From Paraphysomonas bandaiensis (taxonomy: Eukaryota > Protista > Chrysophyceae), in NCBI GenBank assembly GCA_965644295.1, contig CBFFRP010000291.1:1-64000 (forward strand): 64,000 nucleotides of DNA, in the 5' to 3' direction. This document shows, piece by piece, positions 816 to 43,800 of the stretch (position 1 is the first letter of the stretch; each line of letters starts with the position of its first letter). The notes beneath the pieces are model-generated. The model was given only the letters and a program-made list of their open reading frames with translations. It was not told where the DNA came from and did not search any database. A program made the position numbers and the translations under genes.

Positions 816-1030
816 TGCTATACATAGTGGGGTAATAAACTAAGAACTTTGATAGCTCATTGACCTATTCAATTACTATTGTTACTTGCAGCTGACAGAA
901 AACCTTAAGGAAAACTTTCTCAGATATAGAAACTCAACTTATTCTGTACCAAAACACTTGCTGACAGAAACAACTTCAAAATGGCATGCGCCTGTGTTCT
1001 ACTCGCCATGGAGCACCTATGAGAAACAAA

Positions 1031-9014: not shown

Positions 9015-9672
9015 ATACAAACATACATACATACATACATACATACATACATACATACATACATACATACATACATACATACATACATACATTCATAAAT
9101 ACATACATACATACATACATACATACATACATACATACATACATACATACATACATACATACATACATACATACATACATACATACATACATACATACAT
9201 ACATACATACATACATACATACATACATACATACATACATACATACATACATACATACATACATACATACATACATTCATACATTCATACATACATACAT
9301 ACATACATACATACATACATACATACATACATACATACATACATACATACATACATACATACATACATACATACATACATACATACATACATACATACAT
9401 ACATACATACATACATACATACATACATACATACATACATACATACATACATACATACATACATACATACATACATACATACATACATACATACATACAT
9501 ACATACATACATACATACATACATACATACATACATACATACATACATACATACATACATACATACATACATACATACATACATACATACATACATACAT
9601 ACATACATACATACATACATACATACATACATACATACATACATACATACATACATACATACATACATACAT
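9015..9672. repeat. (TACA)n tetranucleotide microsatellite, ~650 bp
   Basis: Nearly uninterrupted acat/taca run between the divergent DNAJC2 and AP3B starts. Confidence 0.99.
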
Positions 9673-9796
9673 AATCTCACTTCGGGTCCACTTTTTCTCT
9701 GCAGGTTCATTGGCTCGTATGTATGTATGTACGTGTGGATGATTGTTATAGTGTGGCAGTGTGCAGATATATACCATTCGGGTGAATTACATTAAA

Positions 9797-22982: not shown

Positions 22983-25900
22983 CTATTTCGCCTTGTCATT
23001 ACGCTTGCGATTGCTTAGTCGACCTTGTAATCGTAGTTTTGCAACATCGTGACGGGTAGCCATAGACATGCGATGGCGCGTTGTATTGACAGTTAACTTC
23101 TTCACTAAATCTTTACTTGTCATACTTGCACCTCGTGTTTCAGTCGAAGAATATTTTTCTTCCGTGTCTGTCACTTTATCCTTTTTATTCTGAAGTCTCT
23201 GCTCCAGCCTACTCCGCGCATCACTCTCACGGAATTTCATTGATACATCCTTCCCCGCCAATCCCATCGCAAACTTCTTCTTGGCATCTAAAACACTCTC
23301 GGCTTCTTCATCAATACTCTTTTGTGACCTAACCACAACGACAGGCCGAAAGCTATCCCCAGTGAATATTCTTCTCGGGGAGGGGGGAAGTATATTAACC
23401 TTCATATCGAAGTCATCACCATCATCTATATCCGAACTTAATCCAGCCGAACCATCTGATACCGCTTCGCTGTCCATTTCAATTGTATATTCCGAATTTA
23501 ATGTATTATCGGGAACGTTACTAAGTATACCGAGTGGTCTTTTAGCAGCAATACTCAAGTACTCATTTCCTGTATCTGTACAGGCAGATAAATTGCTCAC
23601 TTTAGTATCCTGCTCGGTAGCGCATTCTACCACAACATCAGATTGTTCGCTTCCAGGCTGTGAAATTTCAAATATTTGTGGCGCTATCATATTATCACGA
23701 GGTAAGCCAAAGCGTTTGCTCATTCTTGCTAATCGTGTCGCTTTGCGTAATTGGCGGCGTTCAGCCCCATGTGCTCCTGCACTACTACCTTCAACTTCCT
23801 CTCCACTAGAACTACTCAACTCGAACAACTTGTCCATCATACCATCTGCTTTCAGCTTTGCTGCCAACTTAGGAAGCTTTCTTGGTGTGGCTGCTCCATC
23901 TGACTGCTCAACCTCTTCGTCAGACAGGGCACCAAGAGTAACGTCATGCTCAATAACCATGCGCTTCATGTAGCTAACAACTTCATCCTCCGGTCGATGT
24001 ACATTGGGTAGAGATCGATCTCCGCTTCTACGCACAGCATTTGTTCCCGACTTTGGGGATTCGCTAGAGTCGTCGCCGTCGCTACTGGTGCTGCTTAAGT
24101 CATAAAGTTTCTCCAGCATACCATTCGTTCGTAATTTGGAGGCCAAATGTAAGCCCTGTCTATCACTCTCCGCCCTGTCAAGCTCATCATCAAACTCACC
24201 CAGGACTTCCCCAAGTTCCACCTCATTCTCTCGCACCATCCGCTTCATATACCCCACAACCTCACTCTCCGGCCGGCCTTTTTGCCTGCGCTGACGAAAG
24301 TTTCGAATGACCTTACGAGCTCCCATTGTAGCCGCCAGTGAAGGGCCTTGTATTGAGCTATCTCCCACTACAGACTTTTTGTCCATATGCCTTCCCAATC
24401 TCGTCATACGAGCAGCCCGATAAGTTCGTCTATGCTCGCGGTGTTGTTTCGCTTCTTCTCCATCGTCCTCTCCACTGCTGCTCAACTCAAAAAGTTTGTC
24501 CATCATTCCTTTCTTCTTTAACAAAGCAGCAAGCTTTGTCGATTCCTGGGTCTCGTCATTATCGAAGTCGTCAGAGGTAGCTCCGAAAAGAGCTTGGCCT
24601 TCCTGTACCATGTGGCCCATATACCCCACAATCTCTTCCTCCGGCCGATGCCGACGTTTAGTATCGGTGTCTTCCTCTGAAGAAAATCTTTCCAGAGAGT
24701 GAATTGACTGACTATCCAAATCACTGTTTTCTAGGGTGACTTTGTTGTCAGATGACAGAGTTCCCTCCTTGCGTTCATCCTTATCGTCATCACTGAGATC
24801 CAAGTCTCTCAACCTATCCATCATTCCTAATGACTGCAGTATCGCTCGTAACTTCGGTTGTTTCCTTCGTTCCTGAGCATCGTTGTCATACTCGTCGCCA
24901 GACAACTGTCCGAATCCGGTATCATGTTCTCCAACCATTTTCTGCATCGCGATCACAATGTCACGGGCCCTTTGCTCCTCAAAATTGAATTCATCGGTAT
25001 CCGCAGCGACTGGACTCATGTCCTTCTCAAGATCGCTGCAACTTCTCAAGAGCCTCCGCTTTCCATCAGGCAGTGCGAAGTCACCGTCAATAGACACAAA
25101 TGGGGGCCTGCAGCGAGATAGTCTTTGGTCCTGGTACCACTTACCCTCAATTTGTTCGGCTTGTAATCGATGCGCTCTGTCAATCGCTCTGTAGTTGTAA
25201 TACACGATTGGACCAAATATAGCAATAGCTATAAGCAGTGGTACTACAACATAACCAGGGTTCGTTTCAAACAGAACTACATGAAGCAACCCAATGTAAC
25301 CAAACAGGCTCCAGTTTACTAAACTGAAAAACATTTGTTCCATTGGTGCCGGTAGATTCATCAATAATCCGAACATAAATAGCAGTAATACCGACATACT
25401 ATTGATAAACGCTGTCACTCTCAGCTTTCCTCGGTAAGTATTGGCTGTGCTCTTGTCACGTCTGTACGTGCGTTTCGGAAGTGGTGTCCGAAATCCCATC
25501 ACAACACCACTTTCAAAGAGATGCGGAAAGCCTCGAGCAACACGAGTCGAAACAAAGAGGTAATCACAAGCATTGAACTGACCATCGTCATCTTTGCTCG
25601 GCTCCTTAGAATCCTGATTGACTAGTTTCGCTTTATAATTTTCAACAGCATAAACTACATTACGCTTGATGCGACTCACTTCTGAAAATATAAGAGAGGG
25701 TATAATCATCTGTGAGATTACCATACATGCTGTGCTGACAATAACAACCTCAAAAAATAACCACAGCAGGAATGACTGTAACCACGCATTCTGACGATTT
25801 TCGGATTGATTTAAGGCGAATAAAAATACATAAAAGAGAAGTGCCATGTTAAATAGGATAATAAACGCCCACCCCATGAACTTCACGTATGCACTGACAG

Positions 25901-28900
25901 TTTTAACCTGTCCACTTCCATTACCTATACCCTTTCTCTCAACTATTTTACCCTTGGCGCCAAGTAGCAAATCCTGCTGAAACAGGAAAAGAATACGGCG
26001 ACCTCGTGCTTCATCAGATAGCATTGACATAGTTTGGATCTCTTTGACCACAGTTTCTCTAACAGATCGAATATCTGATAGCAATGGGCCCATTACACTT
26101 TTATTAGCTGCCATGAGGCTTCTCATTCGGCCAGTTGTACTAACGGGAACATCATCCATTTGTAGCAACTCTTTGGCCATTGATACATCGATTCCCCAAG
26201 CCATATCGAATTCTCGAAGTTGTTTTGGAGATAAACTAGCCCTATATTTGTCAATTTTGCTAATCATATCTATCAGTTCGTCACGAGGACTAACACCCAA
26301 CCCACCCGCTATAGTAGCTCGCTTCGAGATTTTGTCTTCCGAATTCTTTACACCAACTTGATTGTTCCGAAATTTGTTGCTAAACATAGCCATCCGTTTT
26401 GGTGCTTGAACCCCCTGTGTCCCTTGATGACGGCTGACATCACTATTTATCGGCACTACAGCTGATTCGTTCGAATTCTCCGTTGGCTTTGCCAGTATTT
26501 CAATTATGACGATCTCCAGAACAACGACTAGAGGAAGGCTCAACATAGCACACACAACAGCAACTATAAATATGGCTTGAGTACTGTCACTTGGTTCACG
26601 GAAATGGCAAGTTGAAGCCTCCGAATCAAAGTAGCACTTACTTTCGTGAGACGAAAAAGGTGACCGCTCTTCCAAGCACTCATTCTTGTTATCAATGCCT
26701 TTACAAGACCCATCATCAGGGTTCACAAGATTGTACAGCAACGCATTAAAAAACATGGTGGATATTACAGCACATACAAGAGAGAGAGCCCTCAGTACAC
26801 GAGGAAACTCCGGTGTGTAGTGGTACACCAAGCTGACCCAACGGTGGGACTGTTTCAGTTCTCGGATAAACACAGACACGAATGGCTCATTACGGAAAAT
26901 AGCAGGAAATATGGACTCTACAATTTCAACCTTGTCCTTTGCAGCTGGAGCGTTTAGTGGTCGCGCTGCACGGCCGTGAATATTCTGAGCTGCATTTTTC
27001 TTTATTTCCTCTTTCTTACTTACTTCATCATCTGCTTTATCACTGTAAAAAACCCCACAACACCCAAAGCATGCTATAAAACCCAGAGTCACGACCACTT
27101 TCCAACTACGAGTCACATCGCCCACAGTCAAATCACCTGCCGACCGCCACGTGGTCACAAAATCGTCCAGCACAAATTCTGTCATCGCAACGAATTGTGC
27201 GTTCACATACTCGGATCCACCAGAGGATGGCGGTGAACCAGAATTTGCAGCACCAGAAGGACAGATACAATTGACAGAAGTCAGAGACGACGATGCTATG
27301 TCCACTTCACAACTGCTGTCGACTACATCAACACCCACTACTCTGTTACATACAGGAACTAAGGTAGTCTTTGGGCAATGTATTTCAAATATTCCAGTGA
27401 CATTTTCGCAAACAAAAGTGTAATTTGATCCGTCCGGGCAATGATACACCTCACTCGTCTGAAATTTATCCTTCGTACAGACCGCCTCAATGATGGATTC
27501 GTTAAAGACAACTCCATAATCAACTGGCACTATGTTTTGAAGGGAAATATTCAATATTGACGAACTGTTTGTTCTATTCGTCTCCGAACTTGCACTTATA
27601 ATTGACAAGGGGTTGGCTGACAAACCTGGCGTTAAAGTGTCATACATTGCAGCATCAAACGATACCAAACAGTAGCCGCTTGTACTTGGTGCGATTGACG
27701 ACACATAAGAAGTTTCTTTTGATGCCAACAACTCTGCCGATGTTTGGGGTATTGAAAGCGTAAAATTATCAGATGAGTCCACTAATATTGCAGATATCCT
27801 TATCTTAGACTTCAGGGACTGGAACGTATACTCTCCCAATATCATGTCGCTTGAAATAACACCACAGAACTTTTCAAGCATATTAGACAACGATGTAATT
27901 ATGCCCGTTTTGTATTCTGTAGTTAGTACAGGGAAGTCATAAAAGTCTTGAAATCGGCTCACAGCATCAATGGCATTCAGTACTGCTTCAAGACCTTCCA
28001 CTGAAATGTCAACGTCAGATGCCGAGTCTAATATCACATGTATGGCTGACACTGCACAGTCTGCACCTCTCGAGCTCAGCTTAGTTGGGTCTATAGAAAG
28101 CGTACGCAATACTGCAATCCAGGACTGAATAGCTGATAGAGTGGCATCCTGCAATTGAGACAAGGTCTGCAATGCACACAGTATTGTTTCCTGGAGGCCA
28201 GTTTTATAAGCCATTTCTACTTCATCAATGGAGCAATCTGCACCGTAGTACCCCGGATCGCACACACATATTGCACTGCATGATGGCTCAGACAGAAGAC
28301 AAGAGTCTACCTCAAGACCTAGAGCCGTAACAACATATTGACATGTGCCCTTGTCCGAACACGAATTCACACACTGCTTCGAAACTGGGACACATATCTC
28401 CTGTTGACATTCCATAAATGGAAGACATGATTCATCCGTTGAACAAATATCTCCTTCGTGAACATCCTGATCAACCACACACATGCTGTTGTGATGACCG
28501 TACACTCCAATAAACTCATCTGATACACATGGTCCACAAGTGTGGGCTGTGGTTGAACAGGCCTGCCGATTCAATTGAGTACAATTCGGGGCACTAGCGC
28601 ATACCACAGCACTGGACACAGATGCATAGACTGATATTGCATTCTCTAGAGCATCCACATCATCCAGCATAATCAGCGTCTCAAATGTCTTCGTAACGTT
28701 GTCGACAGATACGGGCTCCATAGAGGGGTTAACAGTTACACTATACTCTCCTGTGCTATATGAGTCAAGCGAATCATAGGTCTGTAAACTGCATTTTAAT
28801 TCGTTATCCTTCGTGTCGGAGCCTCTTGGTAATATTGTTGTGGCGGACGCCTCTTCAGATTTGGAACCTACGACATGAATAGTGTTCTCAGGTGTCAAAT

Positions 28901-31900
28901 ATCCAAAGCGATATGTCAATGGGAGGTCAACATCGCTCCATAATGAGGCCGTAAACACAAAGTTATCCTTCAACTCTGTGCCAACCGAAGGGGAAACAGA
29001 AAAGGAGCCAGGCCTAGGAGGAGAATTGGTCAAAACACGAATAGATGAAGACGTTGTGTCTCCAGATCCATAAGTAAACGATAGTTTAAATATATACACA
29101 ATATTTCCAGAGAGACTGTTTGCTGAAATAGCCAGGTTTGAGGGAAAATTCACTGCTTCATTTGGAATGCTATAACGTGTAGGGGATGTCGTCGAAACTT
29201 TTAATGTATTAATACTTTCGTCATTTACCAGCCATTGTGCCAGTCCAGAGAAAGTACTAGTTATAGATGCCAAAACCTTCAGCTTAGTCGCAGGATTCAC
29301 TACACCCACGATGGGACTAACAGACACTATGGGAACTCCTGAACTAACTGTGGTTATCTTTATGGTTGTTTCATCAGACCGTAACCCACTGCTATCTGTG
29401 ACTGTCAGAGTTATGTAAAACAGTGTATTGATAGCTGTGATGAACGGTGGCCTAACTGACGCCAAGGCAGCATTTACTGATGATGGGTCGCTGTAATTGA
29501 ACACAGAGCTGCCACAAGGTACAAACACCGACCCAGGTGCGAGCGACACACAGCTCCAGTGGTAATGAATACTGCCAGATTCATCCAGCACATCGGGATC
29601 TTGACTTTCAGATGCATTCAGCACTAAGCTCTTCCCGATTTCCACAGCTCCTTCCAAGCCGCCAGAAAGAACAGCATTCAATGTAGATGGAAGAACTTCA
29701 ACTAGAATAGATTTCCTTCCTGCTTCCACGCCTAACGAATTCCTTATCACCACAGTAATTTCAACGCTCATCCCAACAGCAAGGGAATACGCTGGTAACA
29801 AAAACTTATTCGGTGACTTGGATGTGGAAACCATATTCGGCATCACCTCTCGCGATTTAGTATTCAAAACTGTCCATTCATACGTGGGCTTATAAAGAGT
29901 CAAAAATTCTGCAGACGTCTTATACAAGCAGGCATCATAAAACACTGACGCATAAACACTCAGAGTTTGATACCGACGCATAGTTCGTGACCTCGGACCC
30001 ACAATGCTGACGGACGGTGGGGCCGATCGCGCCACTTCGATTCGGTGTGTATCCGAGCCACATCTGCCCAGAAAGTTGCACAATGTGATCTCTATAGTGT
30101 ACACATTACTAGCTTTCAACAGTCCTATAGGTATAGCAGACGGTGGGTTCATGATGTATGAGGAGTTGAAAAAGAAGTTGATAGCATCAACATCAGCTGT
30201 CGTGCTACGTGCAGTGATACTGACTGTGGACCACGCACGCCCACCTGCACCAGTGGAAGACGTAAGATCAAGTGTGAACAGTGAACAATTACTGATTTTG
30301 GAAGGAGCAGTGACAACTACTTTAGGATAACCAGTAACAGCAGAAGTCACTGGTGTTGAACTGGGTGGTGAATGCTCCAGTGATGAGCAAATTGTGGTAT
30401 CGGCGTAAATGCATCTCCCTGTAATCACATTCGGCTGAATAGACACAATGTCACCAACGGTCAATGTGCTCAATGGACCGAGGGATATAGAAAGGCGGTA
30501 AGAGTTTTCCCAACTACAAGACGCCGATGACGCATGACTGAAGCTTAGAACTTGGTCGCAGGAAAAAGAAGTATCAATAAGGTCGCCTTTATTAGTCGGC
30601 GATGTAAACTTGACCAACAACAGTGATCCATCAGACACGAATCGCGCGTAACTGATAATGGGTGCAGGAGGGAGGTGGTATACGGGTAGCACATGAACAT
30701 TCTTACCGGACGGAAACGTGACCGCATATTCTTCACCAGATGATCCACTCAAAGTAATATTGAATTCATAGTTACCTTCCACATCAGCTACAAACATAAT
30801 AGTCTTTTCGAGCTCCGACAAACTCGAATTGGCTGTGTACTTTATTTCACTCGGAGTCAAAGCACTAGATGCGTTGAATGTTTGTAACCGACGATCATCG
30901 GAAGTATTGGTAAAGTTGGAGCCCATGTAAAAAGCGGACACAGTAACAGTCACATCTTGTGACGGAGGTGATTGTAATGATATAGTCATCACATCCGTCA
31001 CTTCACCAGCACCCGGCATGTAATCACTAACTACATCAGCTTCCAACCGGCGACAACATGGCATATTAACCCGTACTAAAGTGCTTCTAATATTAGCTTC
31101 GGACATCGCATCTCCATTGTAGGAAAATGTCGCGCAATATACGTGAACCTGGGCACCAGGAGGTACACCGTTGATACTTACGCTCGCCATACCGGATTGT
31201 GTGTGGGAAATAAAGCCATTCTGTCTAATAGACCACTGCGAGATGTACTCCGTCGACGATAATGCAGCACAATATACAATCCCATCCTCAGATAGCGTAA
31301 CATCTACCTTTAAAGAGTCCTCAGATGATATCGTGACATCCATTGTTAATATATTGGGGGCCAAGTCCCAATATATCTCTGCACTAGGATACTGACTAGG
31401 TGTGGCAGATGGTATCGAAGTAGGCAGCGTAGAGGGCACGCTGGATGGAATATATGACGGATAAGAAGAGGGTTCACATGAGGGAACGCTAGTGGGGAGT
31501 AATGTCGGATTGCCGCTCGGGGCATTGCTTGGACAGCCGCTAGGCTGTGAAGACGGGATCTCAGTTGGTGCTGTTGATGGTTGTGAAGTAGGCTTACTGG
31601 AAGGCTCACTGCTAGGTTCATATGATGGAGATGTTGAGGGAAATGATGTGGGTTCTCCAGATGGCAGACACGAAGGTATGCTGCTGGGCAGTCCAGTCGG
31701 TTGGGTGGAAGGGATAGTCGTCGGTAAAGCTGTGGGAAATGAGCTCGGTTTCGACGTAGGTTCATGCGATGGGCTTGCACTTGGAAAACTAGATGGTGAA
31801 CTCGACGGGACTCCCGTTGGGTACGATGTAGGTACACAAGATGGCTGACTGGTAGGTGAGTCCGAAGGCTGACCTGTGGGTATACTTGTTGGGTATGACG

Positions 31901-33980
31901 TGGGTTGCCTAGAAGGATCTCCTGTTGGTAGCCCAGATGGCCGATATGTGGGTACAGCAGTTGGGAATGAAGTAGGCAGCGAAGATGGCTGCTTCGTAGG
32001 AACACTGGTTGGGCATGTAGTGGGTTGCCCAGATGGTTCACCAGAAGGTACACTGGTTGGGTATGATGTGGGCTGCCCAGATGGTTCACTAGTTGGAGTA
32101 CTGGATGGAGGCGATGTAGGTAACCCAGATGGTTCACCAGTAGGTACACTGGTTGGGTATGACGTAGGTTGCCCAGATGGTTCACCAGTAGGTTCACCGG
32201 TTGGGTATGACGTAGGTTGCCCAGACGGTTCACCAGTAGGAACACTGGACGGAAGCGATGTAGGTAATCCAGATGGTTCACCAGTAGGTTCATCGGTTGG
32301 GTATGACGTAGGTTGCCCAGATGGATAGGACGAAGGCTGCCCAGATGGTTCACCAGAAGGTACACTGGTTGGGTATGACGTAGGTTGCCCAGATGGTTCA
32401 CCAGTAGGTTCACCGGTTGGGTATGACGTAGGTTGCCCAGACGGTTCACCAGTAGGAACACTGGACGGAAGCGATGTAGGTAATCCAGATGGTTCACCAG
32501 TAGGTTCATCGGTTGGGTATGACGTAGGTTGCCCAGATGGATAGGACGAAGGTTGCCCAGATGGCTGACCAGTGGGTCTACCAATTGGGAAAGAAGTAGG
32601 TTGCCCTGTAGGTATACCGGATGGCAATGAGCTAGGCACCCCACTTGGTTCACCAGATGGTTCTCCTGATGGCTGGCTAGTTGGCCATCCACTCGGTTGA
32701 CTTGTGGGCTCACCTGTCGGCTCTGGTGTTGGAAGACTAGTTGGTAATAAGCTAGGCACCCCACTTGGTTCACCAGATGGTTCTCCTGATGGCTGGCTAG
32801 TTGGCCACCCACTCGGTTGACTTGTAGGCTCACCTGTCGGCTCTGACGTTGGAAGACTAGTTGGTAATAAGCTAGGCACCCCACTTGGTTCACCAGATGG
32901 TTCTCCTGATGGCTGGCTAGTTGGCCACCCACTCGGTTGACTTGTAGGCTCACCTGTCGGCTCTGATGTTGGAAGGCTAATTGGTAATAAGCTAGGCACC
33001 CCACTTGGTTCACCAGATGGTTCTCCTGATGGCTGGCTAGTTGGCCATCCACTCGGTTGACTTGTAGGCTCACCTGTCGGCTCTGATGTTGGAAGACTAG
33101 TTGGTAATAAGCTAGGCACCCCACTTGGTTCACCAGATGGTTCTCCTGATGGCTGGCTAGTTGGCCATCCACTCGGTTGACTTGTAGGCTCACCTGTCGG
33201 CTCTGATGTTGGAAGACTAGTTGGTAATAAGCTAGGCACCCCACTTGGTTCACCAGATGGTTCTCCTGATGGCTGGCTAGTTGGCCATCCACTCGGTTGA
33301 CTTGTAGGCTCACCTGTTGGCTCTGACGTTGGAAGACAAGTTGGCAATAAGCTAGGCACCCCACTTGGTTCACTAGTAGGTTTTACTGAAGGTTCCGATG
33401 TCGGATCTCCAGTCGGGTTATTTGTTGGATGAGTGGTGGGAACAGAAGACGGATGGACATCGTTCGCTTCACACAAGTAAGCGTACTCTAAAGGACATCG
33501 GCGATCCCACCAATAGTGATTCCAGCCACTAAGGGAATCCAATACAGCACAATCTTCTTCTTGTGTAATTGCGTCATCGTCAAAATAGTATCCGTTGTTA
33601 GGTTGGTCCTCTCCCCACCTCGTGTATGTGGAAGACTTGTCTTCTACCCATATCCAATTACCCTCGTCATTGTAATCAGTGTAACCAATCCATATGGGAT
33701 AATAACCAGAATACGCGGCAGCGATAGCACTATTTAGAGACCGTGATGTAATCGTGACTAAATAAGACCCATCCGCTTCACATGCATCTCTCGCGTCAGC
33801 CCAGTTTAAGCTACTCGTGAAAAGTCTCAAGCAAGTGCCACCAACGACAGAATAATGAGGTGGACAAGATATATCCAGCGTTCTTATCGACAGTGATCGC
33901 GTTGTATTTTGGCTATGTGGTAGGGCACAAACGAGTGTCGTATACAGAGAAATGAATATAATGAGGTTAATAGCATTCAT
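22983..33980 (-). CDS. Giant polycystin-1/REJ-like membrane receptor A: signal peptide, C-type lectin head, PT/PS stalk, REJ region, EGF-like, GPS-like, ~8 TM, long acidic tail (3665 aa, intronless)
   Basis: CTL motifs (WADARDACEADGSYLVTI, WIGYTD, WGEDQPNN, EDCA), P-x-x-x repeats, REJ-like LVLNASESQDPD / YHWSC / NSPPRPGSFSVSP / WSDVDLPLTYRF, EGF CVCDPGYYGADC, PKD1-like HRWVSL...PRVLRALSL...MFFNALLY. Confidence 0.85.
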   Translation of the reverse strand: MNAINLIIFISLYTTLVCALPHSQNTTRSLSIRTLDISCPPHYSVVGGTCLRLFTSSLNWADARDACEADGSYLVTITSRSLNSAIAAAYSGYYPIWIGYTDYNDEGNWIWVEDKSSTYTRWGEDQPNNGYYFDDDAITQEEDCAVLDSLSGWNHYWWDRRCPLEYAYLCEANDVHPSSVPTTHPTNNPTGDPTSEPSVKPTSEPSGVPSLLPTCLPTSEPTGEPTSQPSGWPTSQPSGEPSGEPSGVPSLLPTSLPTSEPTGEPTSQPSGWPTSQPSGEPSGEPSGVPSLLPTSLPTSEPTGEPTSQPSGWPTSQPSGEPSGEPSGVPSLLPISLPTSEPTGEPTSQPSGWPTSQPSGEPSGEPSGVPSLLPTSLPTSEPTGEPTSQPSGWPTSQPSGEPSGEPSGVPSLLPTSLPTPEPTGEPTSQPSGWPTSQPSGEPSGEPSGVPSSLPSGIPTGQPTSFPIGRPTGQPSGQPSSYPSGQPTSYPTDEPTGEPSGLPTSLPSSVPTGEPSGQPTSYPTGEPTGEPSGQPTSYPTSVPSGEPSGQPSSYPSGQPTSYPTDEPTGEPSGLPTSLPSSVPTGEPSGQPTSYPTGEPTGEPSGQPTSYPTSVPTGEPSGLPTSPPSSTPTSEPSGQPTSYPTSVPSGEPSGQPTTCPTSVPTKQPSSLPTSFPTAVPTYRPSGLPTGDPSRQPTSYPTSIPTGQPSDSPTSQPSCVPTSYPTGVPSSSPSSFPSASPSHEPTSKPSSFPTALPTTIPSTQPTGLPSSIPSCLPSGEPTSFPSTSPSYEPSSEPSSKPTSQPSTAPTEIPSSQPSGCPSNAPSGNPTLLPTSVPSCEPSSYPSYIPSSVPSTLPTSIPSATPSQYPSAEIYWDLAPNILTMDVTISSEDSLKVDVTLSEDGIVYCAALSSTEYISQWSIRQNGFISHTQSGMASVSINGVPPGAQVHVYCATFSYNGDAMSEANIRSTLVRVNMPCCRRLEADVVSDYMPGAGEVTDVMTISLQSPPSQDVTVTVSAFYMGSNFTNTSDDRRLQTFNASSALTPSEIKYTANSSLSELEKTIMFVADVEGNYEFNITLSGSSGEEYAVTFPSGKNVHVLPVYHLPPAPIISYARFVSDGSLLLVKFTSPTNKGDLIDTSFSCDQVLSFSHASSASCSWENSYRLSISLGPLSTLTVGDIVSIQPNVITGRCIYADTTICSSLEHSPPSSTPVTSAVTGYPKVVVTAPSKISNCSLFTLDLTSSTGAGGRAWSTVSITARSTTADVDAINFFFNSSYIMNPPSAIPIGLLKASNVYTIEITLCNFLGRCGSDTHRIEVARSAPPSVSIVGPRSRTMRRYQTLSVYASVFYDACLYKTSAEFLTLYKPTYEWTVLNTKSREVMPNMVSTSKSPNKFLLPAYSLAVGMSVEITVVIRNSLGVEAGRKSILVEVLPSTLNAVLSGGLEGAVEIGKSLVLNASESQDPDVLDESGSIHYHWSCVSLAPGSVFVPCGSSVFNYSDPSSVNAALASVRPPFITAINTLFYITLTVTDSSGLRSDETTIKITTVSSGVPIVSVSPIVGVVNPATKLKVLASITSTFSGLAQWLVNDESINTLKVSTTSPTRYSIPNEAVNFPSNLAISANSLSGNIVYIFKLSFTYGSGDTTSSSIRVLTNSPPRPGSFSVSPSVGTELKDNFVFTASLWSDVDLPLTYRFGYLTPENTIHVVGSKSEEASATTILPRGSDTKDNELKCSLQTYDSLDSYSTGEYSVTVNPSMEPVSVDNVTKTFETLIMLDDVDALENAISVYASVSSAVVCASAPNCTQLNRQACSTTAHTCGPCVSDEFIGVYGHHNSMCVVDQDVHEGDICSTDESCLPFMECQQEICVPVSKQCVNSCSDKGTCQYVVTALGLEVDSCLLSEPSCSAICVCDPGYYGADCSIDEVEMAYKTGLQETILCALQTLSQLQDATLSAIQSWIAVLRTLSIDPTKLSSRGADCAVSAIHVILDSASDVDISVEGLEAVLNAIDAVSRFQDFYDFPVLTTEYKTGIITSLSNMLEKFCGVISSDMILGEYTFQSLKSKIRISAILVDSSDNFTLSIPQTSAELLASKETSYVSSIAPSTSGYCLVSFDAAMYDTLTPGLSANPLSIISASSETNRTNSSSILNISLQNIVPVDYGVVFNESIIEAVCTKDKFQTSEVYHCPDGSNYTFVCENVTGIFEIHCPKTTLVPVCNRVVGVDVVDSSCEVDIASSSLTSVNCICPSGAANSGSPPSSGGSEYVNAQFVAMTEFVLDDFVTTWRSAGDLTVGDVTRSWKVVVTLGFIACFGCCGVFYSDKADDEVSKKEEIKKNAAQNIHGRAARPLNAPAAKDKVEIVESIFPAIFRNEPFVSVFIRELKQSHRWVSLVYHYTPEFPRVLRALSLVCAVISTMFFNALLYNLVNPDDGSCKGIDNKNECLEERSPFSSHESKCYFDSEASTCHFREPSDSTQAIFIVAVVCAMLSLPLVVVLEIVIIEILAKPTENSNESAVVPINSDVSRHQGTQGVQAPKRMAMFSNKFRNNQVGVKNSEDKISKRATIAGGLGVSPRDELIDMISKIDKYRASLSPKQLREFDMAWGIDVSMAKELLQMDDVPVSTTGRMRSLMAANKSVMGPLLSDIRSVRETVVKEIQTMSMLSDEARGRRILFLFQQDLLLGAKGKIVERKGIGNGSGQVKTVSAYVKFMGWAFIILFNMALLFYVFLFALNQSENRQNAWLQSFLLWLFFEVVIVSTACMVISQMIIPSLIFSEVSRIKRNVVYAVENYKAKLVNQDSKEPSKDDDGQFNACDYLFVSTRVARGFPHLFESGVVMGFRTPLPKRTYRRDKSTANTYRGKLRVTAFINSMSVLLLFMFGLLMNLPAPMEQMFFSLVNWSLFGYIGLLHVVLFETNPGYVVVPLLIAIAIFGPIVYYNYRAIDRAHRLQAEQIEGKWYQDQRLSRCRPPFVSIDGDFALPDGKRRLLRSCSDLEKDMSPVAADTDEFNFEEQRARDIVIAMQKMVGEHDTGFGQLSGDEYDNDAQERRKQPKLRAILQSLGMMDRLRDLDLSDDDKDERKEGTLSSDNKVTLENSDLDSQSIHSLERFSSEEDTDTKRRHRPEEEIVGYMGHMVQEGQALFGATSDDFDNDETQESTKLAALLKKKGMMDKLFELSSSGEDDGEEAKQHREHRRTYRAARMTRLGRHMDKKSVVGDSSIQGPSLAATMGARKVIRNFRQRRQKGRPESEVVGYMKRMVRENEVELGEVLGEFDDELDRAESDRQGLHLASKLRTNGMLEKLYDLSSTSSDGDDSSESPKSGTNAVRRSGDRSLPNVHRPEDEVVSYMKRMVIEHDVTLGALSDEEVEQSDGAATPRKLPKLAAKLKADGMMDKLFELSSSSGEEVEGSSAGAHGAERRQLRKATRLARMSKRFGLPRDNMIAPQIFEISQPGSEQSDVVVECATEQDTKVSNLSACTDTGNEYLSIAAKRPLGILSNVPDNTLNSEYTIEMDSEAVSDGSAGLSSDIDDGDDFDMKVNILPPSPRRIFTGDSFRPVVVVRSQKSIDEEAESVLDAKKKFAMGLAGKDVSMKFRESDARSRLEQRLQNKKDKVTDTEEKYSSTETRGASMTSKDLVKKLTVNTTRHRMSMATRHDVAKLRLQGRLSNRKRNDKAK
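32631..33373 (-). repeat. Coding minisatellite, 120-bp (40-aa) unit x6, in the stalk of receptor A
   Basis: ccacttggttcaccagatgg recurs at 32641, 32761, 32881, 33001, 33121 and 33241. Confidence 0.95.
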
Positions 33981-34804
33981 CTGATATATATAGACTGATA
34001 TATAACCACAACAGAGTAATAAGAGGAATAACGCCTATGCTATACACAGCTATGCACTCTCCTCGACGGACAATTCAGTACAAACTGTACCATAAGATGA
34101 TACAGTAACCACTCTGATCAGAATTAAACACAGGCAGTATTAGAGATATGTAATTACCAATAGTATATATATACCCTCATAGACGAGAGACCGACACCAT
34201 CTACTGTGTGTGTATCTGCATATCGTCATCTTTTGGTATACAAACTGTCGTACTTTAGTAGGAATTCCAATCCACACTCTACCATACCATACCATACCAT
34301 TCCACGGCATACGCACTCAGAGTACAGTACGAAGTACCCGTTAACTGGGTTACCACCCCGTCAAAGTTCAACAAAAAGAATTTTAGAAAGGGAAGAAAAA
34401 ACAATGTGTCATTTTCAGTCTAATGTGGTCTTACAGTTAGTACGAGTAGCGAAATATCATATATTTTCGGGTTTACATTCATAGAAAATTGTAGTTTTTA
34501 GACATCTGTCGTGGAAATTAATATAGTTTTTATGACAAGAATATTTTTTCATATGTAATTTACTGCAGTGGTTAGAGGCGATGGCTGATATATGGTATGT
34601 AACATATAGATGTGAGTCAGATCGATAAGTGTTGTCTTAAAGCTCTGAATGACACCTGTATTGATATTGTTATAGCCTATCGCGAAACTGAAACAATGCC
34701 CTTATGGTACTAACCCTTACAATAGCCTCCTATAGCTAACTAAGCCTATAAACTGTTCATACCTTTAGTTCTATATTATTATTGTATACTTTCGAGGATT
34801 CACT
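33981..34804. promoter_or_regulatory. Putative shared bidirectional promoter of the two receptor genes
   Basis: 824-bp spacer between divergent ATGs (33980 minus, 34805 plus), containing TACAG/ATACC-rich tracts like other 5' regions in the window. Confidence 0.55.
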
Positions 34805-37800
34805 ATGAAATATACAATAGCGATCTTATTTATTTTGTTGGGACAGTATAATATTTTAGTATTATCCCAGTCGTGTACGGAAAATACTGTGACGACGATA
34901 GCAGGGGACGGTAGCGACTCTTATGTCGATGGGGTGGGTACTAATGCCAGATTCAAGACATTGGCTGGTGCCAAAGTATCATCTGATGGGAGTTTTGCTT
35001 TACTCTGTGACGAAAATGCGGATGTAGTCCGGCACGTCTCACTGGCGACATCGGTTGTGTCCACACTTGCTGGTGGGTCACATTCTGGTTATTTAGACGG
35101 GACTGGTACAAATGCCAGATTTGACACTCCATCTGCTTTAGCAATATCTAGTGACATGTCGTTCGCACTAATTGCTGATAGAACTACTAATAGGGTGCGC
35201 AAGATTATTATATCGACCAAATTGGTTAGTGTTCTAAGTGGAAGTGGGTCAGCCGGAGTCGTAGATGGAACTGGAACTGGTGCACAACATGACAGGCCTC
35301 AGGGGATCGCAATATCTAGCGATGATGTATTCGCACTTGTCGTGGGAGACAATGATGTGTTGCGACATATCGTTATTTCCACTGGAGTTGTTACAACAGT
35401 TGCAGGAACAACCGCGTCTGGGACTAGTAATGGTGTGTATTGTTCGATTGTTTATATGCTGCCAATGTTTAATGTGTGTTATTTGTAGGTGTGGGTACCA
35501 ATGCGCGCTTCAATGACCCCTATGGCGTCACCTTATCCCCCGACGACACGTACGCTCTTATTGCGGACACTGACAACCACCGTATTCGAAAGGTTGTTTT
35601 AACATCGAAGGTGGTGACTACAATAGCAGGTAGCAGTAGCGGAGATTTAGGGGGCGTTGGGACCAATGCTCGATTCCATCAACCACATGGCATTGCCATT
35701 GACCCCTCAGGAACCTACGCTTTGATAACGGACACCAACAACCATAAGATTAAAAAGATTATACTTACCTCTTCTGTGGTATCGACTTACGCAGGATCCG
35801 GCACGTCCACATATGCTGATGGTTCCTTGTTGTCAGCGAGTTTTGATGAACCGTGGGGGATCGGACTATCCAGTGGTGGCCTTTTTGCTTTAATCGCAGA
35901 TAGTAAAAACAGACGACTGAGGATGATTACCATAGCATGTCCATCGCCCACATCAACTCCGACGGCGTCCCCTACGTACGCTCCTTCATCGATTCCTACG
36001 AGTTTCCCGACCTTTACACCAACTGTGTCGCCCACTAGAATACCAACTTCCGCACCTACTACGGCTCCCACACTTTCGCCTACGGGATGCCCGACACATA
36101 CCCCCACGTCCATTCCAACCAGTGTTCCGACGGGTAAGCCTTCTACGTTCCCCACATCGGCACCATCTGGGCAACCCACATCGTGTCCGTCAAATGTGCC
36201 TACGGGTGAACCATCTGGGTTACCTACCTCGCCTCCATCCAATACCCCCACTGGTGAACCATCTGGGCAACCTACGTCATACCCAACCAGTGAACCTACT
36301 GGTGAACCATCTGGGCAACCTACGTCATACCCAACCAGTGTACCTACTGGTGAACCATCTGGGTTACCTACATCGCTTCCCTCCAATACACCTACTGGTG
36401 AACCATCTGGGCAACCTACTTTATCTCCGACAGGTGTACCTACTGGTGAACCATCTGGGTTACCTACATCGTATCCAAGTAGTACACCTACAGGTAAACC
36501 ATCTGGGCAACCTACATCGCTTCCCTCCAGTGTACCTACTGGTGAACCATCTGGGCAACCTACGTCATACCCAACCGGTGAACCTACTGGTGAACCATCT
36601 GGGTTACCTACATCGCTTCCGTCCAGTATACCTACTGGTGAACCATCTGGGCAACCTACGTCATACCCAACCAGTGAACCTACTGGTGAACCATCTGGGC
36701 AACCTACATCGCTTCCGTCCAGTATACCTACTGGTGAACCGTCTGGGCAACCTACGTCATACCCAACCGGTGTACCTACTGGTGAACCATCTGGGCAACC
36801 TACGTCATACCCAACCAGTGTACCTTCTGGTGAACCATCTGGGTTACCTACATCGCTTCCGTCCAGTGTACCTACTGGTGAACCGTCTGGGCAACCTACG
36901 TCATACCCAACCGGTGAACCTACTGGTGAACCATCTGGGCAACCCACGTCATACCCAACCGGTGTACCTACTAGTGAACCATCTGGGCAACCTACGTCAT
37001 ACCCAACCGGTGAACCTACTGGTGAACCATCTGGGCAACCTACGTCATACCCGTCCACTGTACCTACTGGTGAACCGTCTGGGCAACCTACGTCATACCC
37101 AACCGGTGAACCTACTGGTGAACCATCTGGATTACCTACATCGCTTCCGTCCAGTGTACCTACTGGTGAACCGTCTGGGCAACCTACGTCATACCCAACC
37201 GGTGAACCTACTGGTGAACCATCTGGATTACCTACATCGCTTCCGTCCAGTGTACCTACTGGTGAACCGTCTGGGCAACCTACGTCATACCCAACCAGTG
37301 TACCTACTGGTGAACCATCTGGGCAACCCACATCATACCCAACCAGTGTACCTTCTGGTGAACCATCTGGGCAGCCCACTACATGCCCAACCAGTGTTCC
37401 TACGAAGCAGCCATCTTCGCTACCTACTTCATTCCCAACTGCTGTACCCACATATCGGCCATCTGGGCTACCAACAGGAGATCCTTCTACGCAACCCACG
37501 TCATACCCAACAAGTATACCCACAGGTCAGCCTTCGGACTCACCTACCAGTCAGCCATCTTGTGTACCTACATCGTACCCAACGGGAGTCCCGTCGAGTT
37601 CACCATCTAGTTTTCCAAGTGCAAGCCCATCGCATGAACCTACGTCGAAACCGAGCTCATTTCCCACAGCTTTACCGACGACTATCCCTTCCACCCAACC
37701 GACTGGACTGCCCAGCAGCATACCTTCGTGTCTGCCATCTGGAGAACCCACATCATTTCCCTCAACATCTCCATCATATGAACCTAGCAGTGAGCCTTCC

Positions 37801-40800
37801 AGTAAGCCTACTTCACAACCATCAACAGCACCAACTGAGATCCCGTCTTCACAGCCTAGCGGCTGTCCAAGCAATGCCCCGAGCGGCAATCCGACATTAC
37901 TCCCCACTAGCGTTCCCTCATGTGAACCCTCTTCTTATCCGTCATATATTCCATCCAGCGTGCCCTCTACGCTGCCTACTTCGATACCATCTGCCACACC
38001 TAGTCAGTATCCTAGTGCAGAGATATATTGGGACTTGGCCCCCAATATATTAACAATGGATGTCACGATATCATCTGAGGACTCTTTAAAGGTAGATGTT
38101 ACGCTATCTGAGGATGGGATTGTATATTGTGCTGCATTATCGTCGACGGAGTACATCTCGCAGTGGTCTATTAGACAGAATGGCTTTATTTCCCACTCAC
38201 AATCCGGTATGGCGAGCGTAAGTATCAACGGTGTACCTCCTGGTGCCCAGGTTCACGTATATTGCGCGACATTTTCCTACAATGGAGATGCGATGTCCGA
38301 AGCTAATATTAGAAGCACTTTAGTACGGGTTAATATGCCATGTTGTCGCCGGTTGGAAGCTGATGTAGTTAGTGATTACATGCCGGGTGCTGGTGAAGTG
38401 ACGGATGTGATGACTATATCATTACAATCACCTCCGTCACAAGATGTGACTGTTACTGTGTCCGCTTTTTACTTGGGCTCCAACTTTACCAATACTTCCG
38501 ATGATCGTCGATTACAAACATTCAACGCATCTAGTGCTTTGACTCCGAGTGAAATAAAGTACACAGCCAATTCGAGTTTGTCGGAGCTCGAAAAGACTAT
38601 TATGTTTGTAGCTGATGTGGAAGGTAACTATGAATTCAATATTACTTTGAGTGGATCATCTGGTGAAGAATATGCGGTCACGTTTCCGTCCGGTAAGAAT
38701 GTTCATGTGCTACCCGTATACCACCTCCCTCCTGCACCCATTATCAGTTACGCGCGATTCGTGTCTGATGGATCACTATTGTTGGTCAAGTTTACATCGC
38801 CGACTAATAAAGGCGACCTTATTGATACTTCTTTTTCCTGCGACCAAGTTCTAAGCTTCAGTCATGCGTCATCGGCGTCTTGTAGTTGGGAAAACTCTTA
38901 CCGCCTTTCTATATCCCTCGGTCCATTGAGCACATTGACCGTTGGTGACATTGTGTCTATTCAGCCGAATGTGATTACAGGGAGATGCATTTACGCCGAT
39001 ACCACAATTTGCTCATCACTGGAGCATTCACCACCCAGTTCAACACCAGTGACTTCTGCTGTTACTGGTTATCCTAAAGTAGTTGTCACTGCTCCTTCCA
39101 AAATCAGTAATTGTTCACTGTTCACACTTGATCTTACGTCTTCCACTGGTGCAGGTGGGCGTGCGTGGTCCACAGTCAGTATCACTGCACGTAGCACGAC
39201 AGCTGATGTTGATGCTATCAACTTCTTTTTCAACTCCTCATACATCATGAACCCACCGTCTGCTATACCTATAGGACTGTTGAAAGCTAGTAATGTGTAC
39301 ACTATAGAGATCACATTGTGCAACTTTCTGGGCAGATGTGGCTCGGATACACACCGAATCGAAGTGGCGCGATCGGCCCCACCGTCCGTCAGCATTGTGG
39401 GTCCGAGGTCACGAACTATGCGTCGGTATCAAACTCTGAGTGTTCATGCGTCAGTGTTTTATGATGCCTGCTTGTATAAGACGTCTGCAGAATTTTTGAC
39501 TCTTTATAAGCCCACGTATGAATGGACAGTTTTGAATACTAAATCGCGAGAGGTGATGCCGAATATGGTTTCCACATCCAAGTCACCGAATAAGTTTTTG
39601 TTACCAGCGTATTCCCTTGCTGTTGGGATGAGCGTTGAAATTACTGTGGTGATAAGGAATTCGTTAGGCGTGGAAGCAGGAAGGAAATCTATTCTAGTTG
39701 AAGTTCTTCCATCTACATTGAATGCTGTTCTCTCTGGCGGCTTGGAAGGAGCTGTGGAAATCGGGAAGAGCTTAGTGCTGAATGCATCTGAAAGTCAAGA
39801 TCCAGATGTGCTGGATGAATCTGAATCCAGCGGCAGAATTCATTACCACTGGAGCTGTGTGTCGCTCGTACCTGGGTCGGAGTTTGTACCTTGTGGCAGC
39901 TCTGTGTTCAATTACAGTGAGCCATCATCAGTAAATGCTGCCTTGGCGTCAGTTAGGCCACCGTTCATCACAGCTATCAATACACTGTTTTACATAACTC
40001 TGACAGTCACAGATAGCAGTGGGTTACGGTCTGATGAAACAACCATAAAGATAACCACAGTTAGTTCAGGAGTTCCCATAGTGTCTGTTAGTCCCATCGT
40101 GGGTGTAGTGAATCCTGCGACTAAGCTGAAGGTTTTGGCATCTATAACTAGTACTTTCTCTGGACTGGCACAATGGCTGGTAAATGACGAAAGTATTAAT
40201 ACATTAAAAGTTTCGACGACATCCCCTACACGTTATAGCATTCCAAATGAAGCAGTGAATTTTCCCTCAAACCTGGCTATTTCAGCAAACAGTCTCTCTG
40301 GAAATGTTGCATATATATTTAAACTGTCGTTTACTTATGGATCTGGAGACACAACGTCTTCAACTATACGTGTTTTGACCAATTCTCCTCCTAGGCCTGG
40401 CTCCTTTTCTGTTTCCCCTTCGGTTGGCACAGAGTTGAAGGATAACTTTGTGTTTACGGCCTCATTATGGAGTGATGTTGACCTCCCATTGACATATCGC
40501 TTTGGATATTTGACACCTGAGAACACTATTCATGTCGTAGGTTCCAAATCTGAGGAGGCCTCCGCCACAACAATATTACCAAGAGGCTCCGACACGAAGG
40601 ATAACGAATTAAAATGCAGTTTACAGACCTATGATTCGCTTGACTCATATAGCACAGGAGAGTATAGTGTAACTGTTAACCCCTCTATGGTGCCCATATC
40701 TGTCGACAACGTTTCGAATACATTTGAGACGCTGATTATGCTGGATGATGTGGATGCTCTAGAGAATGCAATATCAGTCTATGCATCTGTGTCCAGTGCT

Positions 40801-43800
40801 GTGGTATGCGCTAGTGCCCCGAATTGTACTCAATTGAATCGGCAGGCCTGCTCAACCACAGCCCACACTTGTGGACCATGTGTATCAGATGAGTTTATTG
40901 GAGTGTACGGTCATCACAACAGCATGTGTGTGGTTGATCAGGATGTTCACGAAGGAGATATTTGTTCAACGGATGAATCATGTCTTCCATTTATGGAATG
41001 TCAACAGGAGATATGTGTCCCAGTTTCGAAGCAGTGTGTGAATTCGTGTTCGGACAAGGGCACATGTAAATATGTTGTTACGGCTCTAGGACTTGAGGTA
41101 GACTCTTGTCTTCTGTCTGAGCCATCATGCAGTGCAATATGTGTGTGCGATCCGGGGTACTACGGTGCAGATTGCTCCATTGATGAAGTAGAAATGGCTT
41201 ATAAAACTGGCCTCCAGGAAACAATACTGTGTGCATTGCAGACCTTGTCTCAATTGCAGGATGCCACTCTATCAGCTATTCAGTCCTGGATTGCAGTATT
41301 GCGTACGCTTTCTATAGACCCAACTAAGCTGAGCTCGAGAGGTTCAGACTGTGCAGTGTCAGCCATACATGTGATATTAGACTCGGCATCTGACGTTGAC
41401 ATTTCAGTGGAAGGTCTTGAAGCAGTACTGAATGCCATTGATGCTGTGAGCCGATTTCAAGACTTTTATGACTTCCCTGTACTAACTACAGAATACAAAA
41501 CGGACATAATTACATCGTTGTCTAATATGCTTGAAAAGTTCTGTGGTGTTATTTCAAGCGACATGATATTGGGAGAGTATACGTTCCAGTCCCTGAAGTC
41601 TAAGATAAGGATATCTGCAATATTAGTGGACTCATCTGATAATTTTACGCTTTCAATACCCCAAACATCGGCAGAGTTGTTGGCATCAAAAGAAACTTCT
41701 TATGTGTCGTCAATCGCACCAAGTACAAGCGGCTACTGTTTGGTATCGTTTGATGCTGCAATGTATGACACTTTAACGCCAGGTTTGTCAGCCAACCCCT
41801 TGTCAATTATAAGTGCAAGTTCGGAGACGAGTAGAACAAACAGTTCGTCAATATTAAATATTTCCCTTCAAAACATAGTGCCAGTTGATTATGGAGTTGT
41901 CTTTAACGAGTCCGTCATTGAGGCGGTCTGCACGAAGGATAAATTTCAGACGAGTGAGGTGTATCATTGCCCGGACGGATCAAATTACACGTTTGTTTGT
42001 GAAAATGTCACTGGAATATTTGAAATACATTGCCCAAAGACTACCTTAGTTCCTGTATGTAACAGAGTAGTGGGTGTTGATGTAGTCGACAGCAGTTGTG
42101 TAGTGGACATAGCATCGTCGTCTCTGACTTCTGTCAATTGTATCTGTCCTTCTGGTGCTGCAAATTCTGGTTCACCGCCATCCTCTGGTGGATCCGAGTA
42201 TGTGAACGCACAATTCGTTGCGATGACAGAATTTGTGCTGGACGATTTTGTGACCACGTGGCGGTCGGCAGGTGATTTGACTGTGGGCGATGTGACTCGT
42301 AGTTGGAAAGTGGTCGTGACTCTGGGTTTTATAGCATGCTTTGGGTGTTGTGGGGTTTTTTACAGTGATAAAGCAGATGATGAAGTAAGTAAGAAAGAGG
42401 AAATAAAGAAAAATGCAGCTCAGAATATTCACGGCCGTGCAGCGCGGCCAAGTAACGCTCCACCTACAAAGGACAAGGTTGAGATCGTAGAGTCCATATT
42501 TCCTGCTATTTTCCGTAATGAGCCATTCGTGTCTGTGTTTATCCGAGAACTGAAACAGTCCCACCGTTGGGTCAGCTTGGTGTACCACTACACACCGGAG
42601 TTTCCTCGTGTACTGAGGGCTCTCTCTCTTGTATGTGCTGTAATATCCACCATGTTTTTTAATGCGTTGCTGTACAATCTTGTGAACCCTGATGATGGGT
42701 CTTGTAAAGGCATTGATAACAAGAATGAGTGCTTGGAAGAGCGGTCACCTTTTTCGTCTCACGAAAGTAAGTGCTACTTTGATTCGGAGGCTTCAACTTG
42801 CCATTTCCGTGAACCAAGTGACAGTACTCAAGCCATATTTATAGTTGCTGTTGTGTGTGCTATGTTGAGCCTTCCTCTAGTCGTTGTTCTGGAGATCGTC
42901 ATAATTGAAATACTGGCAAAGCCAACGGAGAATTCGAACGAATCAGCTGTAGTGCCGATAAATAGTGATGTCAGCCGTCATCAAGGGACACAGGGGGTTC
43001 AAGCACCAAAACGGATGGCTATGTTTAGCAACAAATTTCGGAACAATCAAGTTGGTGTAAAGAATTCGGAAGACAAAATCTCGAAGCGAGCTACTATAGC
43101 GGGTGGGTTGGGTGTTAGTCCTCGTGACGAACTGATAGATATGATTAGCAAAATTGACAAATATAGGGCTAGTTTATCTCCAAAACAACTTCGAGAATTC
43201 GATATGGCTTGGGGAATCGATGTATCAATGGCTAAAGAGTTGCTACAAATGGATGATGTTCCCGTGAGTACAACTGGCCGAATGAGAAGCCTCATGGCAG
43301 CTAATAAAAGTGTGATGGGTCCATTGCTATCAGATATTCGATCTGTTAGAGAAACTGTGGCCAAAGAGATTCAGACTATGTCAATGTTATCTGATGAAGC
43401 ACGAGGTCGCCGTATTCTTTTCCTGTTTCAGCAGGATTTGCTACTTGGCGCCAAGGGTAAAATAGTTGAGAGAAAGGGTATAGGTAATGGAAGTGGACAG
43501 GTTAAAACTGTCAGTGCATACGTGAAGTTCATGGGGTGGGCGTTTATTATCCTATTTAACATGGCACTTCTCTTTTATGTATTTTTATTCGCCTTAAATC
43601 AATCCGAAAATCGTCAGAATGCGTGGTTACAGTCATTCCTGCTGTGGTTATTTTTTGAGGTTGTTATTGTCAGCACAGCATGTATGGTAATCTCACAGAT
43701 GATTATACCCTCTCTTATATTTTCAGAAGTGAGTCGCATCAAGCGTAATGTAGTTTATGCTATTGAAAATTATAAAGCGAAACTAGTCAATCAGGATCCT

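Follow-up and report, generated by a model that had tools for sequence, protein, structure and literature searches.

The human genes CTRB1 and CTRB2 are 97% identical and lie opposed to each other, and a polymorphic 16.6-kb inversion described for them swaps promoter, exon 1 and intron 1 while leaving both genes intact (as summarised in PMC6145291, which cites Pang et al.). On chromosome XIV of Saccharomyces, homogenised 4.2-kb inverted repeats of paralogous genes undergo recurrent flip/flop inversion (Salzberg et al. 2022, PMC9731477); of the conversions between them, about 4% end in a crossover, and over the timescales of laboratory work the orientation remains stable (PMC9731477). The mammalian X-linked FLNA-EMD inversion is presented as a similar case (Caceres et al., as cited in PMC9731477). 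In Ogataea polymorpha and Komagataella, a starvation-induced inversion moves MAT genes into and out of centromeric silencing during mating-type switching (PMC5720833). Here we describe two divergently transcribed REJ-domain receptor genes of approximately 3,650-3,850 amino acids (aa) each, which flank an 824-bp spacer in the genome of Paraphysomonas bandaiensis (Chrysophyceae) and whose bodies form a long inverted repeat. The stretch analysed, referred to below as the window, comprises 64,000 nt and corresponds to positions 1-64,000, forward strand, of contig CBFFRP010000291.1 (C291) in assembly GCA_965644295.1; it is the first 64 kb of the contig, from its base 1, in an assembly of 62.5 Mb and 669 contigs.

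The reading that we favour, with a probability of about 0.7, is that of an old divergent receptor pair whose bodies have been homogenised by gene conversion, with occasional inversion of the intervening DNA as a by-product. According to this model, an old pair of divergent paralogues, belonging to a REJ-domain receptor family that is very large in this stramenopile protist, would carry non-homologous heads (a C-type lectin in one gene and a six-blade NHL propeller in the other) on a common stalk, REJ ectodomain and membrane region of 7-8 passes, with the greater part of the cytoplasmic tail shared as well. Repeated, patchy gene conversion from arm to arm (concerted evolution) would hold the inverted shared bodies at 97.6-99.7% identity, being halted on the inner side by the non-homologous heads and on the outer side about 740 bp before the stop codons. 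With a common bidirectional promoter, two sensors built on a single signalling body would be produced from the locus. Some of the conversions would resolve as crossovers, so that the central cassette would invert now and then and give intact genes with swapped heads and tails. Such inversion would be a passive structural polymorphism of the CTRB1-CTRB2 or Saccharomyces chromosome XIV type rather than a dedicated switch.

The closest parallel is CTRB1-CTRB2, with which the locus shares opposed similar paralogues, inverted homology inside the genes, an exchange of 5' parts, ORFs (open reading frames) that stay intact and the lack of a dedicated recombinase. The CTRB inversion swaps only signal peptides and alters an expression ratio, whereas here whole ligand-binding domains would be exchanged against cytoplasmic tails; and while the inversion has been observed in CTRB, here we infer it. 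With Saccharomyces chromosome XIV and FLNA-EMD the locus would have in common inverted paralogous repeats kept alike by conversion, an inversion that arises as a crossover by-product, and no known function of orientation. In those systems, however, the repeats hold whole genes, the inverted segment contains unrelated genes and no chimeric proteins arise; there, concerted evolution has been shown across strains and species, whereas here it is suggested by a single genome.

The two genes appear as giant ORFs pointing outward from the centre, at 22983-33980 on the reverse strand (3,665 aa) and at 35476-46428 on the forward strand. We denote them gene L and gene R, and their parts are as follows.

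22983..33980, reverse strand: gene L, an intronless ORF of 3,665 aa encoding a REJ-domain multi-pass receptor with a C-type lectin head (from the ORF and its translation; Pfam Lectin_C 6.5e-13, PT 1.4e-99, REJ 3.5e-42)
33924-33980, reverse strand: signal peptide of gene L (hydrophobic N-terminus)
33468..33812, reverse strand: C-type lectin domain of gene L, aa 57-171 (Pfam)
33981..34804, no strand: intergenic spacer of 824 bp, AT-rich and divergent, the presumed bidirectional promoter region (from the sequence; promoter function presumed)
34805..35432, forward strand: exon 1 of gene R, with the signal peptide and NHL blades 1-3 (start ATG at 34805; the GTNARF-type blade motif stays in phase across the intron)
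35433..35488, forward strand: intron of gene R, 56 nt, GT..AG, phase 1 (read from the sequence; with the exons joined, the blade motif and the long reading frame are both re-established)
35489..46428, forward strand: exon 2 of gene R, with NHL blades 4-6, PT stalk, REJ domain, transmembrane region and cytoplasmic tail B (ORF; Pfam NHL 4.1e-13, PT, REJ 7.9e-43)

The REJ domain (PF02010) is present in both ectodomains, with E values (3.5e-42 and 7.9e-43) well beyond the cut-off. Removing the 56-nt intron gives gene R six NHL blades after its signal peptide. This micro-intron cuts the propeller between blades 3 and 4, and gene L is intron-free over 11 kb. Judged from their sequences, both genes are intact and evolve under purifying selection, and the 824-bp spacer probably serves both of them as a bidirectional promoter.

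The bodies of the two genes, from the distal stalk to most of the cytoplasmic tail, make up the arms of the inverted repeat.

23722..32540 (core 23726-32324), reverse strand: left arm, with the distal PT stalk, REJ domain, Cys-rich region, 7-8 transmembrane segments and most of the cytoplasmic tail (synonymous divergence, dS, of 0.027 from the right arm)
36883..45684 (core 37075-45679), forward strand: right arm (ungapped and gapped alignment)
32325..37074, no strand: unique central cassette of 4,750 bp, which a crossover between the arms would invert; it contains the spacer, both heads and the PT arrays next to them

As ungapped blocks, 97-99% complementary, the repeat pairs 25089-29576 with 39832-44319, 29576-32324 with 37075-39823, and 23726-25069 with 44336-45679; a gapped BLAST alignment merges these blocks into 23722-32540 against 36883-45684, with 97.6% identity over 8,829 columns. 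The arms therefore measure 8.6-8.8 kb, are 97.6-99% identical and are separated by 4.75 kb. A profile in steps of 250 columns stays at 97-100% identity nearly throughout, with a few sharp dips. An earlier note on this DNA had described more than 8 kb of inverted near-identity around a segment of about 5 kb, as well as a bidirectional spacer of 824 bp; both descriptions agree with what we find, the core coming to 4,750 bp and the spacer to the same length as noted there.

Several lines of evidence indicate that the identity of the bodies is secondary and the duplication itself old. In the last 114 codons of the genes, which lie outside the repeat, dS reaches 0.72 (with a ratio of nonsynonymous to synonymous divergence, dN/dS, of 0.16), as against 0.027 over the arms, so that the synonymous divergence of the arms is approximately 27-fold below that of the 3' end. 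Within the arms, dS increases outward from 0.0036 over the proximal 2.25 kb through 0.033 in the middle to 0.042 in the distal part, and total divergence likewise increases, from 0.27% next to the heads to 4.3% at their outer ends. The 132 differences found in 8,234 arm columns are moreover strongly clustered: their variance-to-mean ratio per 100 nt is 6.0, compared with 0.97 for a random placement, and not one of 5,000 permutations reached 6.0. Identical runs between the arms extend up to 746 nt, and four islands show local divergence of 13-31%, comparable to the 18% seen at nucleotide level in the old 3' end.

25020..25126 (partner 44282-44385), no strand: the largest island of retained divergence, with 33 differences in 107 columns, directly after the last transmembrane segment
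29487-29595, 26922-26961 and 24022-24116: further divergence islands in the arms

A separate earlier note had pointed to mosaic divergence, with which these clustered differences and islands agree. Since the arms and the 3' end contrast so sharply in dS, and since the arm differences are clustered, we regard the bodies as probably homogenised by gene conversion. The arm pattern reads as the signature of repeated or patchy conversion and indicates that homologous exchange between the arms has occurred; that conversion is ongoing we infer from the within-genome evidence of one assembly.

The inner edge of the inverted repeat falls within a PT array of gene R. It is possible that conversion tracts start in break-prone PT minisatellites at this edge, which would explain the outward gradient in divergence. 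Two such arrays were found with Tandem Repeats Finder, and all PT minisatellite unit lengths are multiples of three.

32622..33373, reverse strand: L-specific PT minisatellite, coding, 6.3 copies of a 120-bp unit, 97% identity between units
36162..37439, forward strand: PT minisatellite of gene R, coding, 26.6 copies of a 48-bp unit; this is the array that contains the inner edge of the repeat

A second locus of the same design exists in this genome. On contig C116, a head-to-head REJ pair occupies 511-21449, with arms of about 8.4 kb (511-8749 against 21449-13048); some 6.6 kb of body are mostly 97-100% identical, with a few divergent islands, and in the C-terminal tails dS rises from 0 to 0.3-0.5. 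The right head consists of NHL and leucine-rich repeats and the left one of an unassigned domain (approximately 9202-9822, reverse strand), and interruptions of the ORFs occur at matching positions in both copies. At the protein level, the bodies on C116 share no more than about 28% identity with those of the locus described here. NHL heads occur in at least 12 REJ-family loci, and C-type lectin heads in about 8. Given the low body identity and the wide spread of NHL heads, the two loci are best regarded as independent cases, and a common origin of both is not supportable. There are at least five divergent pairs of REJ neighbours in the genome, and our sequence comparison covered four of them and one other locus. 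No DNA-level inverted homology was found at the divergent pairs on C380, C328 and C169. In the pair at C380:264351-267458, NHL heads on both genes face each other across a short spacer.

The same arm pattern could have a simpler history, in which one body was overwritten once and recently, either by a long conversion tract with patchy repair or by an in-frame inverted segmental duplication into an existing paralogue, and the copies then diverged with no further exchange or inversion. One event and many are inseparable from a single genome; the high-divergence islands could stem from patchy mismatch repair of one heteroduplex, and the outward gradient could be one tract with a ragged end. Yet dS differs more than ten-fold between the proximal (0.0036) and distal (0.042) parts of the arms, which suggests events of different ages, and the independent locus on C116 is in the same state, which indicates a process that recurs in this genome. 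In addition, arms of 8.6 kb with 98-99.7% identity, placed 4.75 kb apart, form a strong recombination substrate, as is generally known and as the yeast case illustrates (PMC9731477). A static locus of this kind thus seems to us unlikely, and we continue to favour repeated conversion between the bodies of an old receptor pair.

Some points do weigh against this preference. The case for concerted evolution is built on within-genome contrasts in one haploid assembly rather than on a tree of the arms from several strains, and the dS of the 3' end is an estimate from 114 codons. Consensus polishing of long-read assemblies can inflate the identity between repeat copies. Much the same pattern would also result from one large and recent conversion whose mismatches were repaired patchily, with no exchange since, and co-expression of the two genes from the 824-bp spacer is a presumption.

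Polishing that mixed the copies, or fold-back chimeric reads, could also have created the near-identity or the inverted duplication as an artefact. Assemblies are known to be error-prone at long inverted repeats, the window begins at base 1 of its contig, and the evidence is at the level of the assembly. But the two copies differ in their heads, which are complete and carry signal peptides, and in their 3' ends, which evolve under purifying selection; their indels keep to whole codons, and their 132 differences leave both frames unbroken; the structure is asymmetric about its centre, unlike fold-back artefacts, and C116 provides a second locus of the same design. We hence regard an artefact as highly improbable. 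The repeat is accordingly treated in what follows as a genuine feature of an old, conversion-homogenised pair.

Outside the high-identity repeat, the two genes end in tails of their own.

22983..23721, reverse strand: tail A, about 130 aa unrelated to tail B followed by 114 conserved codons (alignment; unique in the genome)
45685..46428, forward strand: tail B (alignment; no other DNA-level copy in the genome)

The tails share 78% amino-acid and 82% nucleotide identity over their last 114 aa, and about 130 aa cannot be aligned, in keeping with the statement of the earlier note that the tails differ. As neither has another DNA-level copy in the genome, both tails diverged in place rather than being imported; a third-party donor was considered and rejected, there being no DNA-level match elsewhere in the genome.

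To appreciate what a crossover between the arms would produce, we simulated the inversion at 130 crossover points distributed across them. Both ORFs remained open in 130 of 130 simulations, with products of 3,666-3,669 and 3,641-3,644 codons (gene R being counted as exon 2). All indels within the arms are multiples of three, and none of the 132 differences breaks either frame. In each simulated inversion, tail B ended up behind the lectin head and tail A behind the NHL head. These results bear out what the earlier note had expected from arms in the same reading phase, namely intact ORFs after inversion and a re-pairing of the heads. Its suggestion that four receptors could come from the locus is overstated; only two would exist at a time, and the differences in their distal parts are modest. 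In the shared ectodomain, the re-pairing would exchange 21 substitutions plus a 3-aa indel, to which 7 substitutions in the membrane region and 39 in the part of the cytoplasmic tail inside the repeat are added; across about 2,750 shared residues, the substitutions total about 67. In the tails outside the repeat it would further exchange the unalignable stretch of about 130 aa, which looks disordered, and 21 of the 114 residues at the end.

Occasional inversion would be expected because a fraction of conversions resolve as crossovers; it would be harmless and, on mechanistic grounds, may plausibly occur at some low rate. The assembly contains no second orientation and no haplotig of the locus: the core is single-copy and the arms are present exactly twice. 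We found no close relatives or transcripts in which heads could be phased with tails; a word-index protein search, evaluated on the tail region of the full-length protein, returned one weak match (P0001, 36% over one third of the region), while the distal 716 aa as a stand-alone query and tail A searched against metagenome contigs gave no match. These empty searches may simply reflect collections in which neither the organism nor its kin is represented.

A more ambitious idea is that the cell inverts the head cassette by recombination between the arms at a useful frequency, thereby re-pairing heads with alternative tails, and that selection for invertibility keeps the arms identical. In its fuller form, twin-bodied head-to-head units at two or more loci would be flipped in clonal populations, making up a recombinase-free, shufflon-like diversification of receptors in a eukaryote. 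The geometry fits this idea exactly, two loci of one genome have the design in common, and arm identity peaks beside the cassette. Eukaryotes do have inversion switches that run on homologous recombination and use no dedicated site-specific recombinase, as Ogataea shows (PMC5720833). The likeness to Ogataea lies in a reversible inversion through homologous recombination between inverted repeats with no known site-specific recombinase; there, orientation controls silencing, whereas here each presumed promoter would move with its own head.

Bacterial shufflons and invertases (Rci, Hin/Gin/Cin) and the phase-variable inversions of type I hsdS genes work through a dedicated recombinase at short sites, and as a rule they comprise several segments and variable C-termini. 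What they have in common with the locus is that inverting coding DNA links a constant part, in frame, to one or another variable part, but none of those other features is found here. Among the window ORFs of at least 150 aa, Pfam detected no recombinase, integrase or transposase domain in a search confined to the 64-kb window, which agrees with the earlier note, where no recombinase gene had been visible. The spacer and heads contain no inverted repeats or short crossover sites, the only inverted homology being that of the 8.6-kb coding arms, and the 824-bp spacer itself matches no Rfam family and has no internal inverted repeat. The locus has one invertible segment.

Further observations argue against regulated flipping. 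Because each presumed promoter lies in the cassette and moves with its own head, an inversion would leave the expression state unchanged. The tails differ mainly in the disordered-looking stretch of about 130 aa and in scattered substitutions, which makes a functional pay-off doubtful. The three other divergent REJ pairs (C380, C328 and C169) are without homogenised arms; tandem members of the family also look homogenised, so that arm identity needs no special explanation; and the assembly shows a single orientation. Regulated inversion at this locus therefore appears quite improbable, and its fuller, multi-locus form equally so. Of the proposal in the earlier note that the cassette is a eukaryotic shufflon, the inversion geometry and the homologous exchange between the arms hold up; the likeness to a shufflon does not, given one segment, no short sites, no recombinase in the window and promoters that would travel with the heads. 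A programmed, shufflon-like switch is unsupported, and we retain the reading of a homogenised receptor pair with occasional, passive inversion.

The receptors belong to a large family. At least 91 matches to the REJ model lie above the Pfam cut-off in the genome; many of them sit inside uninterrupted ORFs of 2,000-7,800 aa, with modular heads. Tandem REJ genes on C363 (approximately 346-372 kb), C475 (approximately 65-135 kb) and C66 (approximately 250-270 kb) have membrane parts with identical scores at constant spacing, and differing head matches. Match scores and spacings suggest that homogenisation or recent duplication is family-wide and independent of orientation. The NHL-head regions at C516:29746-30606 and C609:3287-4147 give identical scores in three consecutive matches, and they may represent a very recent duplicate or an uncollapsed haplotig.

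Different modules of the two receptors have their closest relatives in different places. The lectin head closest to that of gene L is on contig C394 (approximately 178-189 kb, 51% aa identity), and the C394 gene carries the only other recognisable tail end, whereas both the closest membrane body (37%) and the closest NHL head (48%) are on contig C513 (approximately 1.8-8.7 kb). This indicates that the family evolves by recombining modules, and gene L may be a chimera of two lineages. We also considered whether past inversions could be read from the tail on C394; with 35% identity to tail A and 33% to tail B, it is uninformative in this respect.

The layout of gene L comprises an ectodomain of about 2,290 aa, membrane segments and about 740 aa of cytoplasmic tail. 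Some 7-8 hydrophobic segments were located between aa 2295 and 2927 by simple hydropathy scanning rather than by topology prediction. The cytoplasmic tail (23700-25000 on the reverse strand and 44400-45700 on the forward strand) contains about five tandem modules of approximately 100 aa, each with a conserved acidic/aromatic start and a 'GMMDKLFELSSS'-like end, which match no Pfam family. As in polycystin-1, PKDREJ and the sea-urchin REJ receptors, a REJ domain in a large ectodomain is followed by several membrane passes, and a C-type lectin head is also present in PKD1 and suREJ1. The PKDREJ gene is intronless or nearly so, as are the genes at this locus. The receptors described here differ in having an NHL-propeller head, a long mucin-like PT stalk and the repetitive cytoplasmic tail of about 740 aa, and the hydropathy scan places their hydrophobic segments at about 7-8, against 11 transmembrane segments in PKD1. 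There was no Pfam match to PLAT, GPS or the polycystin channel (PKD_channel), even at E values up to 1 with the body halves as queries, and no sequence match to solved structures in the PDB. For these reasons we name the proteins REJ-domain multi-pass receptors rather than polycystin-1 orthologues, and membership in the polycystin-1 group beyond the REJ domain is not supported by these sequence searches. Among stramenopiles, the Ectocarpus protein Esi0130_0068 is a REJ receptor with 6-7 transmembrane segments (PMC4700764).

Another protist family offers a looser comparison. In Babesia bovis, the surface-protein genes ves1-alpha and ves1-beta form many head-to-head pairs around a short intergenic region and are shaped by conversion (PMC2034396). 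Large surface proteins, a multigene family, divergent pairs and gene conversion are common to both systems. The proteins themselves are unrelated, and Babesia gains its diversity as donor copies are converted segment by segment into a single active locus, rather than by inversion; the comparison implies no antigenic variation at the locus described here.

The neighbours of the receptor pair in the window are ordinary nuclear genes, encoding RNA polymerase II subunit 2 (RPB2), a Myb protein, an adaptin, a kinesin and a DUF3336 protein.

As far as the present data go, the locus reveals no new mechanism, since inversions between opposed paralogues with an exchange of 5' gene parts are known in humans and the homogenisation of inverted repeats with recurrent inversion is known in yeasts. 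Its most notable point is the recurrence of the design at two loci within a very large receptor family. If the favoured reading is true, this locus and that on C116 would be clean natural cases of concerted evolution limited to the shared body of two modular receptors, while the ligand-binding heads and the far C-terminal ends could diverge freely. The predicted inversion polymorphism, with its re-pairing of heads and tails, would confound short-read assemblies and gene models of the REJ family. The finding would also bear on how a REJ family of more than 90 members in a phagotrophic stramenopile diversifies by head swaps on a conserved chassis.

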